In this document: piece by piece, positions 4,640-61,535 of the stretch
Numbering within the stretch: the stretch's first letter is position 1
Layout: each line of letters opens with the position of its first letter
From: Malacoraja senta
Taxonomy: Eukaryota
Reading direction: 5' to 3'
DNA length: 64,000 nt
Assembly: GCA_038087875.1 (NCBI GenBank)
Contig: JAXLNO010002694.1
Location: 248,001 to 312,000 of the forward strand
Translations under genes and position numbers: made by a program
The notes under the pieces: model-generated
Database searches by the model: none
The model's input: only the letters and a program-made list of their open reading frames with translations
What the model was told of the DNA's origin: nothing

Positions 4640-7445
4640 GTGTTTAGGCACACAGAATACATGGGGATCGAGGATCTAGTGGGAGGGAGGAACTGAAGGG
4701 AATCCACATTAGTCAGGAAATGGTGTTAGGTAAACTGTTGGGACTGAAGGCTGATAAATCCCCAGGGTCTGATCCCAGAGAACTCAAGGAGGTGGCCCTA
4801 GAAATTGTGGATGCATTGATGATCATTTTCCAATATTCTCTCGATTCTTTGATCAGTTCCTGTGGACTGGAGAGTAGCCAATGTAACTCCACTTTTTAAG
4901 GAAGGAGGAAGGGAGAAAACTGGGAATTATAGGCCAGTTAGCCTTACATCGGTAGTGAGGAAGATGCTTGAGTCGATCGTTAAAGACGTTATAGCAGTGC
5001 ATTTAGAAAGCAGTGACAGGAAGGATTTATGAAGGGGAAGTCATGCTTGACTATCCATGTGGAATTTTTTGAGGATGTAACAAATAGAATGGATAAGTGA
5101 GAGCCAGTGGACGTGGTGTATCTGGACTTTCAAAAACCCTTTGACCAGGTCCCACACAAGAGATTAGTGTGCAAAATTAGAGCACATGTTATTGGCGGTA
5201 GGGTATTGACATGGATAGAGAACTGGTTGGCAGACAGGAAGTAAAGAGTAGGAATTAACGGGTCCTATAAAGGATCGCAGGCAGTGACTAGTGTGGTGCC
5301 GCAAGGCGCAGTGCTGGGACACCAGTTATTTACAATATATATTAACGATTTAGACTAGTGGTTCCCAACATGGGGCGTACGCCGCACAAGGGGGCAATTT
5401 GATTTTTAAGGGGGGCAATTGAGCGCGACTGAGGAGGTCTGGGTCCAAATTTTCAATTTTTATTTTTTTGGATTTTCCATCAGGTAAACATATGTAGTTT
5501 ATGTTTCAGATGTTATTTTGAGTAAATAATTTTTGGGGGGTAAAAAAGGTCTTTATTGTGTAGTTATTACATAATCACCGCGCCATCGCTCTTCATGCAC
5601 GTCGCACGAAGCGCGCGAGGTCATGGGAGAACCTTATTTATTGAATTGGATTTAGAAATGCGATTCAAAGAGCTTTTGCTAAGTTACCCTTATAATATCT
5701 ATTTCCTCCGTTTTCTCTCAAGGGAAAGCAATCCATTTTCTGAGAATTATTTCTTTGACTGCTCGTGCTAAAATGAGTAGTACAAGCAAGAAGAAAGTTT
5801 GTCAGTATTCAGAGGAATATTTAAAACTTGGTTTCATACCCGCTGTCCATGATGAACGGTCACCTTTCTGCCTCTTATGCCAACAATGCTTGACCAACGA
5901 ATCAATGAAACCAGGTCGTCTTGAGGCGCATTTGAAGGCGAAACATAGTGCGTATGTAAATTCAGATTTGAATTACTTCAAATCTTTAAAGGATAAGTTT
6001 GAAAAAAGATCAACAATAAAGTCTGTTTACTGCACAAACTGTTACTGTCAGTCGTACTCTTGAGGCTAGTTATGAAATTTCTTTACTCATTGCTAAATCT
6101 GGAAAAAATCATACTATAGGGGAGGATTTAATTAAACCATCAATATCAGCATTTCTTAAAACAGTTCTGTAAAAAGATGACAAAGATGTTAAAGCCATGC
6201 CACTCAGTAACAACACTGTTAGGAGAAGAACAGATGAAATGAGTGAAGATATTGAAACACAACTTGTTGAAAAGCTGAAATCAAGAAAATTCTCAGTACA
6301 AATGGATGAATCAACTGTGAGAGACAGTGAGGCCTTATTGCTAACCTATGTAAGATATATTGATAAAGGTGAATTTGCTGAAGAAATGTTATTCTGCAAA
6401 TCGTTAGAGACCACCACTACCGCCACTGATATATATAATAAACTAAAACACTACTTAGATGTCAATAATATACCAATGGAAAACATAACATCTTGTGCAG
6501 CTGATGGTGCTCCTGTTATGATGGGCAAGAAAAATGGTTGCTTAAAATTGATGAAAGATGAGAATCCGGAAATGCTTCTTGTGCACTGTGTTATTCATAG
6601 AGGGAACTTAGTGTTGAAAAATATTTCTCCTGTACTTAATGAGGTACTGAAATCAGTTATAAAATCTATCAATGCTATCAAAGCTAATGCCAAATGTGGG
6701 CGTCTTTTCAAGCAATTTTATGAAGATAACAATGCAGACCATGTGAGACTTTTACTTCACACTGAGGTACGGTGGCTTGGAGATGTTACATTTAATTCCT
6801 TCGTCTAAATTTTAGACGAAGGAATTAAATGTAACATCTCCAAGTTTGTGGATGAAACAAAGCTGGGTGGTAGGGTGAGGAGAATGCTATGAGGCTGCAG
6901 GGTGACTTGGATAGGTTGGGTGAGGGGGAAGATGCATGGCAGATGCAGAATAATGTGGATAAATGTGAGGTGGTAAGAACAAGGCAGATTATTATCTGAA
7001 TGGTGTCAGATTAGGAAAAGGGGAAGTGCACGAGACCTGGGTGTCCTTTTACATCAGTCACTGAAAATAAGTCGCAGCAGGCAGTGAAGAAAGCTAATTG
7101 AATGTTGGCTTCATTGCAAGAGGTTTTGAGTTTAGGAACAAGGAGGTCCTACTGCAGTTGTACAGGGCCCTGGTGAGGACATTATTGCTATTGAGGAAGT
7201 GCAGCATACGTTTACCATGTTAATTCCCAGGATGGTGGCACTGACATATGATGAAAGAATGAGTCGACTGGGCTTGTATTCAGTGCAATTTAGAAGGATG
7301 AGAGGGTATCTTATAGAAACATATAAAATTCTTAAAGGATTGGACAGGCTAGATGCATGAAACATGTTCCTGATATTGGGGGAGTCCAGAACCAGTGGTC
7401 ACAGTTTAAGAATAGCGGGTAGGCCATTTAGGATTGAGATGAGGA
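4640..7445 (+). mobile_element. Degenerate CR1 RT fragment split by a hAT insertion (CR1 parts 4640-5355 and 6811-7445)
   Basis: Homologous to the CR1 RT in ORF 59728..61158. The CR1 sequence resumes after the hAT at the tttagac target repeat. Confidence 0.85.
5356..6778 (+). mobile_element. hAT (Buster/Charlie-type) DNA transposon, 3'-truncated, inactivated transposase
   Basis: Left TIR TAGTGGTTCCCAAC; BED zinc finger (CLLC...HLKAKH); catalytic motifs FSVQMDEST and AADGAPVM, CxxH (HCVIH) and HTEVRWL. Frameshift near 6030 and in-frame TAA near 6169. The C-terminal catalytic E region and right TIR are absent. Confidence 0.9.
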
Positions 7446-7631
7446 AGGGCCTGCTTCCACACTATATCTCTAACCTAAACTAAAATTAAATGCTTTGACA
7501 GAGTGGTTTCCATTTGTGAGAAGCGTATAAATAGAAGCCGTCACTAAATCACGTTCAGCAGCAAATGCGGTTGCACATTTAGCAGAAATCCTTCAACCCA
7601 CAAGAATCAAAGTGTCACAGAGTGATACAGT

Positions 7632-7833: not shown

Positions 7834-7836
7834 ACA

Positions 7837-8700
7837 GTGTGGAAACAGGCCCTTCGGCCCAACTCGCCCACACCAGCCAACATGTCCCAGCTACACAGTC
7901 CCACCTGCCTGCGCTTGGTCCATATCCCTCCAAACTTGTCCTATCCACGTACCTGTATAACTATTTCTTAAACGTTGGGATAGTCCCGGCCTCAACTACC
8001 TCCTCTGGCATCTTGTTCCATACACCCATCACCCGCTGTGTGAAAAAGTTACCCCTCAGATTCCTATTGAATCCTTTCCCCTTCACCTTGAGCCTCTGTC
8101 CTCTGGTCCTTGATTCCCCCACTCTGAGCAAGAGACTCTGCATTTACCCAATCTATTCCTCTCATGATTTTATACACCTCAATAAGACCACCCCTCATCC
8201 TCCTGCGCTCCAAGGAATAGAGACCCAGCCTACTCAATCTCTCCCTATAGCTCACACCCACTATTCCTGGCAACATCCTCGTAAATCTTCTTTGAACCCT
8301 CTCAACCTTGACAATACCTTTCCTATAAAATGGTGCCAGAACTGAATACAATACTCTAAATGCGGTCTCACCAACGTCTTATACAACTGCAACATGACCA
8401 CCCAACTTCTCTACTCAATACTCTCCCTGATGAAGGCCAATGTGCCAAAAGCCTTTTTGACCACCTTATCTACCTGGGACTCAACCTTGAAGGAACCATG
8501 CACCTGTACTCCAAGATCCCTCTGCTCCACAACACTCTCCAGAGTCCTACCATTCACTGTGTAGGTCCGGCCCTTGTGTGACGTTCCAAAATGCAACATC
8601 TCACAATTCTCTGTATTAAATTCCATCAACCATTCTTCAGCCCACATAGCCTATCAATCAAGATCCTGCTGCAATCTTTCACAGCCATCTTCACTATCTG
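7837..8700 (-). mobile_element. CR1 3' fragment (second subfamily)
   Basis: Minus-strand ORFs LERVQRRFTRMLPG...ERRRMRGGLIEVYK and VVEQRDLGVQVH. Confidence 0.85.
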
Positions 8701-10010: not shown

Positions 10011-12470
10011 GTGAGATTAGACAATAGACAATGGACAATTGGTGCAGGAGTAGGCCATTCGGCCCTTCGAGCCAGCACCGCCATTCAATTTGATCATGGC
10101 TGATCATCCCCAATCAGTACCCCGTTCCTGGTTGTTCTGCAAAATGAGTTGGAAGTGACAGAGGAGTCTCAAATGTAGTCTAAACTTTGGTGTGGAGTGC
10201 TGTTCCTGGAGTACCCACTCAGCCACCCTTCACTCCAAGGGTTTACTTGCCTTGTAGTCCTGACCCATCGGTCACTCTGTTAACTTGGGCGGCACGGTGG
10301 CGCAACAGCAGAGTTGCTGCTTTACAGCGCCAGAGACCCAGGTTCGATTCTAACTGCGGGTGCTGTCTGTATGGAGTTTGTACGTTCTCCCCGTGACCTA
10401 CGTGGGCTTTCTCCGAGATCTTCGGTTTCTTCCCACACTCCAAAGGCATACAGGTTTGTAGGCTCATTTGCTTGAAATAATTGTAAATTATCCCTAGTGT
10501 GTGTAGGATAGTATTAATGTGCGGGGATCGCTGGTCGGCGTGGACTTGCTTGTTTCTGCGCTGTATCTTTAAATTAAACTAAAATCATCCCCCATTTGAA
10601 ATATCAATGTGCATCACCCTCACTGCGACCTCGTAGGTGTGCCCTTGAAGTTCAGGTTTGTTATTCTCACCCTCATTTCTGCACCATTCACCCCCACTGC
10701 TACACTGTTATAGCAGTGCATTTGGAAAGCAGTGACAGGAAGGATTTATGAAGGGGAAGTCATGCTTGACTCTCCTTCTGGAATGTTTTGAGGATGTAAC
10801 AAATAGAATGGATAAGTGAGAGCCAGTGGACGTGGTGTATCTGGACTTTCAAAAACCCTTTGACCAGGTCCCACACAAGAGATTAGTGTGCAAAATTAGA
10901 GCACATGTTATTGGCGGTAGGGTATTGACATGGATAGAGAACTGGTTGGCAGACAGGAAGTAAAGAGTAGGAATTAACGGGTCCTATACAGGATCGCAGG
11001 CAGTGACTAGTGTGGTGCCGCAAGGCGCAGTGCTGGGACCACAGTTATTTACAATATATATTAACGATTTAGACTAAGGAATTAAATCTAACATCTCCAA
11101 GTTTGTGGATGAAACAAAGCTGGGTGGCAGTGTGAGCTGTGAGGAGGATGCTATGAGGCTGCAGGGCGACTTGGATAGGTTGGGTGAGGGAGCAGATGCA
11201 TGGCAGATGCAGTATAATGTGGATACATGTGAGGTTATCCACTTTGGTGGCAAGAACAAGGCAGATTATTATCTGAATGGTGTCAGATTAGGAAAAGGGG
11301 AAGTGCACGAGACCTGGGTGTCCTTTTACATCAGTTTTACCTTCGATTTTCCAGCATCTGCAGTTCCTTCTTTAACACTGGAAATAAGTATGCAGGCGCA
11401 GCAGGCAGTGAAGAAAGCTAATTGTATGTTGCCTTCATTACAAGAGGTTTTGAGTTTAGGAGCAAGGAGGTCCTACTGCAGTTGTACAGGGCCCTGGTGA
11501 GACCACACCTTGAATATTGTGTGCAATTTTGGTCTCATAATTTGAGGAAGGACATTATTGCTATTGAGGAAGTGCAGCATAGGTTTACCATGTTAATTCC
11601 CAGGATGGCGGCACTGACATATGATGAAAGAATGGGTTGACTGGGCTTGTATTCACTGAAATTTAGAAGGATGAGAGGGCATCTTATAGAAACATATAAA
11701 ATTCTTAAAGGATTGGACAGGCTAGATGCATGAAACATGTTCCCGATGTTTGGGGAGTCCAGAACCAGGGGTCACGGATTAAGAATAACGGGTAGGCCAT
11801 TTAGGACTGAGATGAGGAAGGGCCTGCTTCCGCGTTGTATCTCTAAATTCAAATAAAATTAAATGCTTTCACAGAGTGGTTTCCATTTATGAGAAGCGTA
11901 TAAATAGAAGCCGTCACTAAATCACATTCAGCAGCAAATGCGGTTGCAAATTTAGCAGAAATCCTTCAACCCACAAGAGTCAAAGAGTGATACAGTGTGG
12001 AAACAGGCCCTTCGGCCCAACTCGCCCACACTGCCCAACATGCCCTAGCTACACTGGTCCCATCTGCCTGCGCTTGGTCCATATACCTCCAAACTTGTCC
12101 TATCCATGTACCTGTATAACTATTTCTTAAACGTTGGGATAGTCCCAGCCTCAACTATCTTCTCTGGTAGTTTGTTCCATACACCCACCACCCACTGTGT
12201 GAAAAAGTTACCCCTCAGATTCCTATTGAATCCTTTCCCCTTCACCTTGAGCCTATGTCCTCTGGTCCTCGATTCCCCTACTCTGGGCAAGAGACTCTGT
12301 GCATTTACCCGATCTATTCCTCTCATGATTTTATACACCTCAATAAGATCACCCCTCATCCTCCTGCGCTCCAAGGAATAGAGACCCAGCCTACTCAACC
12401 TCTCCCTATAGCTCACACCCTCTAGTCCTGGCAACATCCTCGTAAATCTTCTTTGAACCCTTTCAAGCTT

Positions 12471-59300: not shown

Positions 59301-61535
59301 ATGGATATAGATAATGCTAAAGATCCATCAATAGTTAAACATAATAAAATAATAATTTTGAAATTTAAATTAAATAAATTATTATCTGCCAATCTTATAA
59401 GGCAATTGATTCTTAAAGTGTTGACGGTGGATATGCAATGGAAGGCATTTAAAGACTGCATGGATGAACTACAACAATTGTTCATCCCAGTTTGGCAAAA
59501 GAATGAATCAGGGAAGGTAGTGCATCCGTGGATAACAAGGGAAATCAGGGATTGTATCAAACTACAAGATGAAGCATACAAATTAGCCAGAAAAAGCAGC
59601 CTACCAGAGGACTGGGAGAAATTCAGAATCCAGGAGGACAAAGGGCTTAATTAGGAAAGGGAAAATAGATTATGAAAGAAAACTGGAAGGGAACATAAAA
59701 ACTGACTGCAAAGGTTTTTATAGATATGTGAAGAGAAAAAGATTAGTTAAAATAATTGTAGGTCCCTTGCAGTCAGAAACAGGTGAATTGATCATGGGGA
59801 ACAAGGACATGGCAGACCAATTGAATAACTACTTTGGTTCTGTCTTCACTAAGGAAGACATAAATAATCTGCCGGAAATAGCGGGAGAACGGGGGTCAAA
59901 TGAGATGGAGCAACTGAGTGAAATCCAGGTTTGTCGGGAAGTGGTATTAGGTAAATTGAATGGATTAAAGGCCGATAAATCCCCAGGGCCAGATAGGCTG
60001 CATCCCAGAGTACTTAAGGAAGTAGCCCCAGAAATAGTGGATGCATTAGTGATAATTTTTCAAAACTCTTTCGATTCTGGAGTAGTGCCTGAGGATTGGA
60101 GGGTAGCTAATGTAACCCCACTTTATAAAAAGAGTGGGAGAGAGAAAACGGGGAATTACAGTCCAGTTAGTCTAACATCGGTAGTGGAGAAAATGCTAGA
60201 GTCAGTTATTAAAGATGGGATAGCAGCACATTTGGAAAGCGGTGAAATCATTGGACAAAGTCAGCATGGATTTATGAAAGGGAAATCATGTCTGACGAAT
60301 CTTATAGAATTTTTCGAGGATGTAACTAGTATGGATAAGGGAGAACCAGTGGGTGTGTTATATCTGGACTTTCAGAAGGCGTTCGACAAGGTCCCACATA
60401 AGAGATTAGTATGCAAACTTAAAGCACATGGTATTGGGGGTTCAGTATTGATGTGGATAGAGAACTGGCTGGCAGACAGGAAGCAAAGAGTAGGAGTAAA
60501 CGGGTCCTTTTCAGAATGGCAGGCAGTGACTAGTGGGGTACCGCAAGGCTCAGTGCTGGGACCCCAGCTATTTACAATATATATTAATGATTTGGACGAG
60601 GGAATTGAATGCAACATCTCCAAGTTTGCGGATGACACGAAGCTGGGGGGCAGTGTTAGCTGTGAAGAGGATGCTAGGAGGCTGCAAGGTGATTTGGATA
60701 GGTTGGGTGAGTGGGCAAATGCATGGCAGATGCAGTATAATGTGGATAAATGTGAGGTTATCCACTTTGGTGGCAAGAACAGGAAAGTAGACTATTATCT
60801 GAATGGTGGCCGATTAGGAAAAGGGGAGATGCAACGAGACCTGGGTGTCATGGTACACCAGTCATTGAAAGTAGGCATGCAGGAGCAGCAGGCAGTGAAG
60901 AAAGTGAATGGTATGTTAGCATTCATAGCAAAAGTATTTGAGTATAGGAGCAGGGAGGTTCTACTGCAGTTGTACAGGGCCTTGGTGAGACCACACCTGG
61001 AGTATTGTGTACAGTTTTGGTCTCGTAATCTGAGGAAAGACATTCTTGCCATAGAGGGAGTACAGAGAAGGTTCACCAGACTGATTCCTGGGATGGCAGG
61101 ACTTTCATATGAAGAAAGACTGGATAGACTCGGCTTGTACTCACTAGAATTTAGATGATTGAGGGGGGATCTTATAGAAACTTGTTCCCGATGTTGGAGA
61201 AGTCCAGAACAAGGGGTCACAGTTTAAGGATAAGGGGGAAGTCTTTTAGGACCGAGATGAGAAAAACATTTTTCACACAGAGAGTGGTGAATCTGTGGAA
61301 TTATCTGCCACAGAAGGTAGTTGAGGCCAGTTCATTGGCTATATTTAAGAGGGAGTTAGATGTGGCCCTTGTGTCCAAAGTGATCAGGGGGTATGGAGAG
61401 AAGGCAGGTACAGGATACTGAGTTGGATGATGAGCCATGATCATATTGAATGGCGGTACAGGCTCGAAGGGCCGAATGGCATACTCCTGCACCAATTTTC
61501 TATTTTTCTATGTTTCTATGTTCCTATGTTTCTAT
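53311..61535 (+). mobile_element. CR1 LINE split by an L1 insertion (CR1 parts 53311-53779 and 59401-61535)
   Basis: EN half (LVGVVYRPP, MGDFN, SDH) ends ...gactggcaattgatt and resumes ggcaattgattcttaaag; RT ORF 59728-61158; 3' UTR and CTATGTTT tail. Confidence 0.93.
53780..59400. mobile_element. L1/Tx1-clade LINE with 5' inversion (minus segment 53780-~56848; inverted plus segment ~56855-59400)
   Basis: Plus: ORF1 C-terminal part (LEARSRRQNLRI, 56858-57469) and ORF2 APE endonuclease (SWNIRG, LQETH, GGDFN, SRID, SDH; 58308-59400). Minus: rest of ORF2 (KTPGPD, LDAEKAFD, RQGCSLSP, LYADD, CDKC..HSFVFC) and an A-rich tail. 11-bp TSD GGCAATTGATT. Confidence 0.93.

Follow-up and report, generated by a model that had tools for sequence, protein, structure and literature searches.

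A 34-nucleotide palindrome at the broken end of a putative Buster-type hAT element: a probable transposase-break repair scar in Malacoraja senta

The locus described here lies in a window of 64,000 nucleotides, by which we mean the whole stretch of DNA that was analysed (Malacoraja senta, assembly GCA_038087875.1, contig JAXLNO010002694.1, positions 248,001 to 312,000 of the forward strand), and all positions are counted from its first letter. It comprises a LINE with a reverse-transcriptase region, the 5' part of a putative Buster-type hAT element inserted into that LINE, and a long palindrome at the point where the hAT element breaks off and the LINE resumes. The coordinates of these features, together with the basis for each of them, are collected in Table 1.

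Table 1. Features of the interrupted LINE, the truncated hAT element and the palindrome between them.
Feature	Position in window	Strand	Basis or remark
Host LINE to the left of the insertion (reverse-transcriptase region), up to and including the left target-site duplication	5101..5355	+	RVT_1 matches, frame continuity
Left 8-bp target-site duplication ATTTAGAC	5348..5355	+	Uninterrupted LINE copies and the 5348 to 6811 joint
Putative Buster-type hAT element, 5' 1.42 kb	5356..6778	+	5' terminal repeat starts TAGTGGTTCCCAAC; truncated after ...HTEVRWL
Decayed transposase pieces	5773-6060, 6020-6169, 6173-6775	+	Coding pieces within the hAT element
3-nt microhomology CTT at the joint	6776..6778	+	Limit of contig alignment at 6778, start of palindrome at 6776
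Left arm of palindrome	6776..6809	+	First 34 nt of the right flank in inverted form; 100% complementary to 6811-6844
Centre base T	6810..6810	+	Complement of the expected first target-duplication base A
Right arm of palindrome	6811..6844	+	TTTAGAC (6811-6817, bases 2-8 of the right target duplication) and 27 nt of LINE flank in original orientation
Continuation of host LINE to about its 3' end	6845..7440	+	Frame continues; high-copy LINE depth to about 7440; 3' limit approximate

The host sequence matches RVT_1 (LINE reverse transcriptase) weakly, and its reverse-transcriptase frame becomes continuous when positions 5356-6817 are removed, ...FTIYINDLD then leading directly into EGIKCNISKF.... 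Two uninterrupted copies of the same LINE family are present in the window, at about 11057-11101 and 60580-60624, and they read AACG-ATTTAGAC-(G/T)A(A/G)GG. The uninterrupted site also corresponds to a joint between 5348 and 6811, sharing 7 bases, that is abundant in the Logan contigs of four public sequencing runs, which do not come from the source individual and whose contigs are informative at the level of the family only. From the uninterrupted LINE copies, together with this joint in the four runs, it follows that the ancestral target was ...AACG ATTTAGAC GAAGG..., that it was duplicated as 8 bp, and that its first base was A. The right duplication now reads T+TTTAGAC; seven of its eight bases have been kept and the first has been replaced by its complement. 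When divided as ATT-TA-GAC, the duplication matches nnnTAnnn, the target-site motif of Buster elements (PMC3499496).

Several of these points had been proposed in a first-pass annotation made from the sequence alone, and they stand. The left duplication at 5348-5355 is confirmed by the uninterrupted LINE copies and by the 5348 to 6811 joint in the four runs, and the same two sources give A as the missing first base of the target duplication, of which the centre T had been taken to be the complement. The right arm, which had been read as CR1 flank starting at the target repeat, is flank of the LINE, here a putative CR1, and begins at base 2 of ATTTAGAC, as indicated by the continuity of the frame and by the other LINE copies. 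Adjoining the 3' end of the LINE, positions 7444-7463 and 7836-7855 form a 20-nt inverted repeat, 95% complementary and with arms 372 nt apart, which may represent the ends of a small DNA element.

The element that occupies this site was compared with known transposases mainly through its last coding piece. This piece (6173-6775, 201 aa) is 96% identical to a catshark protein named 'SCAN domain-containing protein 3-like', and it shares 57-59% of its residues with full-length proteins of 592-607 aa; many of its matches carry the names SCAND3, ZBED5, ZBED8 or FAM200, which belong to the Buster group of hAT-derived genes, and SCAND3 and the Buster genes are related to TcBuster (PMC3499496). Single full-length relatives gave no match when searched against Pfam, NCBIfam and PDB. 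A profile of 30 full-length relatives matched the Hermes structures 2bw3, 4d1q, 6dww and 8edg, with E-values from 7.5e-7 to 4e-6, and the Pfam domain Dimer_Tnp_hAT was found in 20 of the 30, in a C-terminal region that the window copy does not have. These similarities support the placement of the family in the Buster group of the hAT superfamily, and the hAT identity originally given to the element is upheld by the names of its relatives, by the profile match to Hermes and by the dimerisation domain.

The last hAT residue in the window aligns to about residue 336-348 of the relatives of 592-607 aa, which means that this copy lacks its entire 3' end and approximately 43% of the transposase. The 5' end of the element, TAGTGGTTCCCAAC at position 5356, has no second copy on either strand of the window, and the 3' terminal repeat is gone. 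The divergence of the copy from the family contigs is about 0.3-1.7%, and against them it shows a 2-bp deletion after 6021 as well as a stop at 6170; on these grounds it is dead, yet not very old.

Other observations concern the two repeat families at large. The transposase piece at 6173-6775 shows 74-82% identity, over about 200 aa, to proteins of spiders (Trichonephila, Parasteatoda), octopus, salmon louse, bees, scorpion and Hydra, and this similarity across phyla suggests that the putative Buster-type family may have spread horizontally; the salmon louse, a parasite of fish, is among the carriers. The first 300-400 bp of the hAT element (5376-5750), its 5' terminal and subterminal region, are covered by contigs 10-100 times more deeply than the coding part in three of the four public runs, which suggests many short non-autonomous derivatives with the same 5' end. 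Between positions 5000 and 7800 of the window, the runs of six labelled organisms each contain 36-50% of the sampled words, and in the public runs the LINE reaches very high depth and the hAT element is represented at 98-99.7% identity. The LINE and hAT families are thus common to several sequenced species and nearly unchanged among them.

Between the truncated element and the resumed LINE, a repeat search and a direct check showed perfect reverse complementarity between 6776-6809 and 6811-6844, the arms being separated by a single T (6810), in a layout of 34+1+34 that amounts to 69 bases. Beyond the arms there is no further symmetry, CGGTGG on the left standing opposite TTTGTG on the right. 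When the perfect inverted repeats of the 64-kb window with a spacer of at most 6 nt are ranked by the length of their arms, the 34 nt found here are followed by 16, 12 and 10, and arms of 34 nt have a chance expectation of about 1e-15 per window. Folded as single-stranded DNA, the palindrome reaches -36.4 kcal/mol (z = -15 against shuffles). The palindrome is real and not due to chance, and the 34-bp structure with a central T that had been noticed at first pass is confirmed by its exact complementarity; the next-best inverted repeat of the window has arms of 16 nt.

That second-best perfect inverted repeat, at 700-736, has a 5-nt loop. A short repeat occurs twice in direct orientation here (acccgctgagtttctcc at 642 and 691), and the second copy contains the inverted repeat. 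Since no transposon end adjoins the inverted repeat, it is a candidate template-switch product.

The point at which the hAT sequence ends was located with both contigs and proteins. In all four runs, the longest contigs of the hAT family match the window to exactly 6778 and then continue into unlike sequence, for 26, 156, 219 and 548 nt. In the protein alignment, the family continues ...HTEVRWL-SKGNCLKR..., whereas the window reads ...HTEVRWL-GDVTFNSFV-stop. The trinucleotide CTT at 6776-6778 is common to the hAT-family contigs and to the outer end of the left arm. The contigs and the alignment therefore bear out the first-pass statement that the transposase is cut off at HTEVRWL with an overlap of about 3 nt (CTT) with the palindrome. 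They also rule out the left arm as hAT sequence, a possibility that the same annotation had raised against its own reading, and the arm is foreign to the element.

With regard to its source, the left arm agrees with the local flank at every position; in other LINE copies, 2-3 of 30 positions are different, and the left-arm sequence is absent from the uninterrupted LINE copies. Because of this difference between an exact local match and the imperfect matches elsewhere, the arm is regarded as copied from the adjoining flank and not from another LINE, and a second, inverted LINE fragment is ruled out as its origin. Insertion of the hAT element into a pre-existing palindrome was ruled out as well, because the left flank is proper LINE sequence all the way to the duplication. 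Given the 3-nt overlap of CTT, between 31 and 34 nt of the left arm were templated from the flank.

The explanation that we favour, and that we regard as probable, is that the locus records the repair of a break which the transposase had made at the right end of the putative Buster-type hAT element. The axis of the palindrome is the single base adjoining the lost right end of the element, which is now T and was ancestrally A. Hermes nicks the non-transferred strand first, and the 3'-OH of the flank then attacks the transferred strand, so that the flank is closed as a hairpin (PMC6900584); TcBuster leaves footprints of the hairpin type in human cells (PMC3499496). The literature accordingly agrees with the proposal, made at first pass, that hAT transposases hairpin the flanking DNA as RAG does. 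For Ac/Ds, the base at the centre of the palindromic footprints is the complement of the one that adjoined the element end, their joints are usually microhomologous, and their arms reach up to 20 nt in yeast (PMC5873905).

Compared with such footprints, the skate locus has a flank palindrome centred on the complemented boundary base (axis 6810, T against ancestral A) and microhomology at the joint (CTT, 6776-6778). The element, however, is not gone and the flanks are not rejoined: 1.42 kb of hAT sequence and an intact left junction remain, and for this reason the event must be viewed as incomplete or one-sided and not as a classical empty-site footprint. The arm, at 31-34 nt, also exceeds 20 nt, and the first-pass remark that 34 nt is long for such a footprint is therefore correct with respect to the maximum cited for yeast (PMC5873905). 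Through the length of its arm and the partial retention of the element, the scar is an unusual product of a known mechanism. Three considerations weigh against this explanation, namely this length of the arm, the fact that a single locus is concerned, and the extra step that the retained 1.42 kb of the element requires. Nevertheless, the boundary axis, the complemented centre base, the left arm of non-hAT origin, the hAT identity of the element and the CTT joint support the reading as a hairpin-resolution (P-nucleotide-like) footprint, and we infer from them that this putative Buster-type family used flank-hairpin chemistry.

The sequence of events may be envisaged as follows. The element first inserted normally into the LINE and thereby made the 8-bp duplication ATTTAGAC, a step that is documented by the target-site evidence given above. 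Later, the transposase would have cut the element, at its right end at least, by the hAT pathway. The non-transferred strand would have been nicked first, after which the 3'-OH of the flank would have attacked the other strand, thus sealing the right flank as a hairpin whose tip is the first base of the duplication. This hairpin could then have been opened at a distance of about 31-34 nt, on the strand that lies 3' of the tip, or, alternatively, a polymerase primed at the AAG/CTT microhomology could have copied round the unopened tip; a distal nick and a copying round the hairpin give identical products and are indistinguishable from sequence. Either would generate a 3' tail, the top strand then consisting of inverted flank, complement of the tip base and flank, and the end of that tail (...AAG) would pair with CTT inside the element and be sealed by microhomology joining.

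The inner partner of the joint may have been the degraded right part of an element cleaved at one end or, after full excision, a nascent strand that had re-copied 1.42 kb from the sister copy before gap repair was aborted. One-ended cleavage and interrupted gap repair are established routes to truncated elements, and the sequence fits both. The outcome would be a dead 5' half-element, a palindrome of 34+1+34 and an intact flank.

The odd number of bases in the palindrome can be accounted for if the first nick is offset by one nucleotide, as for Hermes, for which Zhou et al. 2004 are reported to have placed the first nick one nucleotide into the flank. With this offset assumed, the flank hairpin would have the top-strand A as its unpaired tip, and a top-strand nick 34 nt from the tip would free a bottom-strand 3' tail running through the tip, which would yield inverted flank, T and flank. 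A nick on the opposite side of the tip would place A at the centre, and a RAG-like nick at the boundary would give an even palindrome.

Among the other explanations, the one that survives best is a template switch independent of any transposase, and we consider it unlikely. In such an event, in the course of replication or of break repair, a nascent strand ending in ...CTT would jump to the AAG complement at 6842-6844, copy 31 nt backwards and go back to its first template, and the 3' part of the element would be deleted in the same event. Template switching makes perfect inverted repeats beside their source (PMC8794818), a switch of this kind needs a microhomology like the 3 nt at the outer end of the arm, and the window holds, at 700-736, another perfect inverted repeat without a transposon end. 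The return point, however, would need to coincide by chance with the exact boundary between the element and the duplication, the centre base would also need to be the complement of the boundary base, and a deletion of at least about 1 kb would need to reach precisely the end of the element. If the template ended at the boundary through a break, that break would most simply be one made by the transposase, and the template switch would then merge into the hairpin scar.

Partial excision through a cryptic internal end, in which the true right end would be paired with a pseudo-end near 6778, the 3' part excised and the two donor hairpins joined, would explain both the clean internal breakpoint and the flank hairpin without degradation or gap repair, and 'sliding' or cryptic-site cleavage has a precedent in a proposal for Ds (PMC1978519). 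Against this, the element side of the joint shows no palindromic nucleotides, and we judge this course of events to be very improbable.

The least probable explanation is an assembly or sequencing artefact, such as a fold-back or chimeric read within the consensus: no contig was seen to bridge 6776-6844 among the family-level contigs of the four non-source runs, but this is presumably uninformative, given that de Bruijn contigs at k=31 cannot traverse inverted arms of 34 nt, and fold-back chimeras mirror sequence of read length, whereas here the symmetry ends at 34 nt, beyond which the two sides differ, one being unique hAT sequence and the other LINE, and the axis, the centre base and the microhomology all obey one biochemical rule, which is unexpected of an artefact.

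Earlier knowledge of the flank-hairpin step of hAT transposition came from Hermes reactions in the test tube and from the short footprints seen in plants, yeasts and cultured cells. If the scar was formed through a flank hairpin, a vertebrate germline has preserved a large product in which the boundary axis, the complemented centre, the microhomology joint and a half-deleted element are united, and this would constitute natural evidence that a putative Buster-type hAT element of a cartilaginous fish cut its flank in the same way as Hermes and Ac. The scar has no evident function and is a fossil of the reaction. It also provides a pattern by which genomes can be searched, consisting of a truncated element followed by an inverted flank copy whose centre is the complement of the duplication base. 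That long flank palindromes are a recurrent, readable signature in the slowly evolving genomes of cartilaginous fish seems to us improbable. If many truncated hAT copies were to carry such palindromes, hairpins would often be opened tens of nucleotides from the tip, or copied round; this would be a repair behaviour undescribed for vertebrates, with a bearing on how V(D)J junctions are shaped in the oldest jawed vertebrates, and the cleavage chemistry of extinct transposon families would become inferable from genome sequence alone.

Three known systems invite comparison with the scar. The closest in form are the Ac/Ds footprints of plants, yeast and Candida, in which, likewise, the flank is inverted around the complement of the boundary base and the joint shows microhomology, and which are attributed to a flank hairpin opened away from its tip (PMC5873905). 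In those cases, however, the arms measure at most 20 nt, in contrast to 31-34 nt in the skate scar, and one flank is joined to the other, whereas in the skate the flank has been connected to the interior of the element. The skate scar is further set apart from the Ac/Ds cases in being germline-fixed, in occurring in a cartilaginous fish and in involving an element of putative Buster type.

RAG nicks exactly at the boundary, from which an even palindrome results, and P tracts are normally a few nucleotides long. The P nucleotides of V(D)J coding joints, where RAG makes the hairpin and Artemis opens it, share with the scar the hairpinning of a flank by a transposase-like nuclease and an off-centre opening that leads to a palindromic addition (shared chemistry, PMC6900584). 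They differ from the skate scar, which has a single odd centre base and a tract ten times longer.

A further resemblance is to internally deleted or 'fractured' copies of Ac, P and other elements of the cut-and-paste type, which retain one intact end with its target duplication and show an internal breakpoint with short microhomology. Such copies arise by interrupted gap repair or by one-ended cleavage, and we know of none that carries a long flank palindrome centred on a base of the duplication. In kind, the scar is probably a known hAT hairpin footprint, of which it would be an atypical member.
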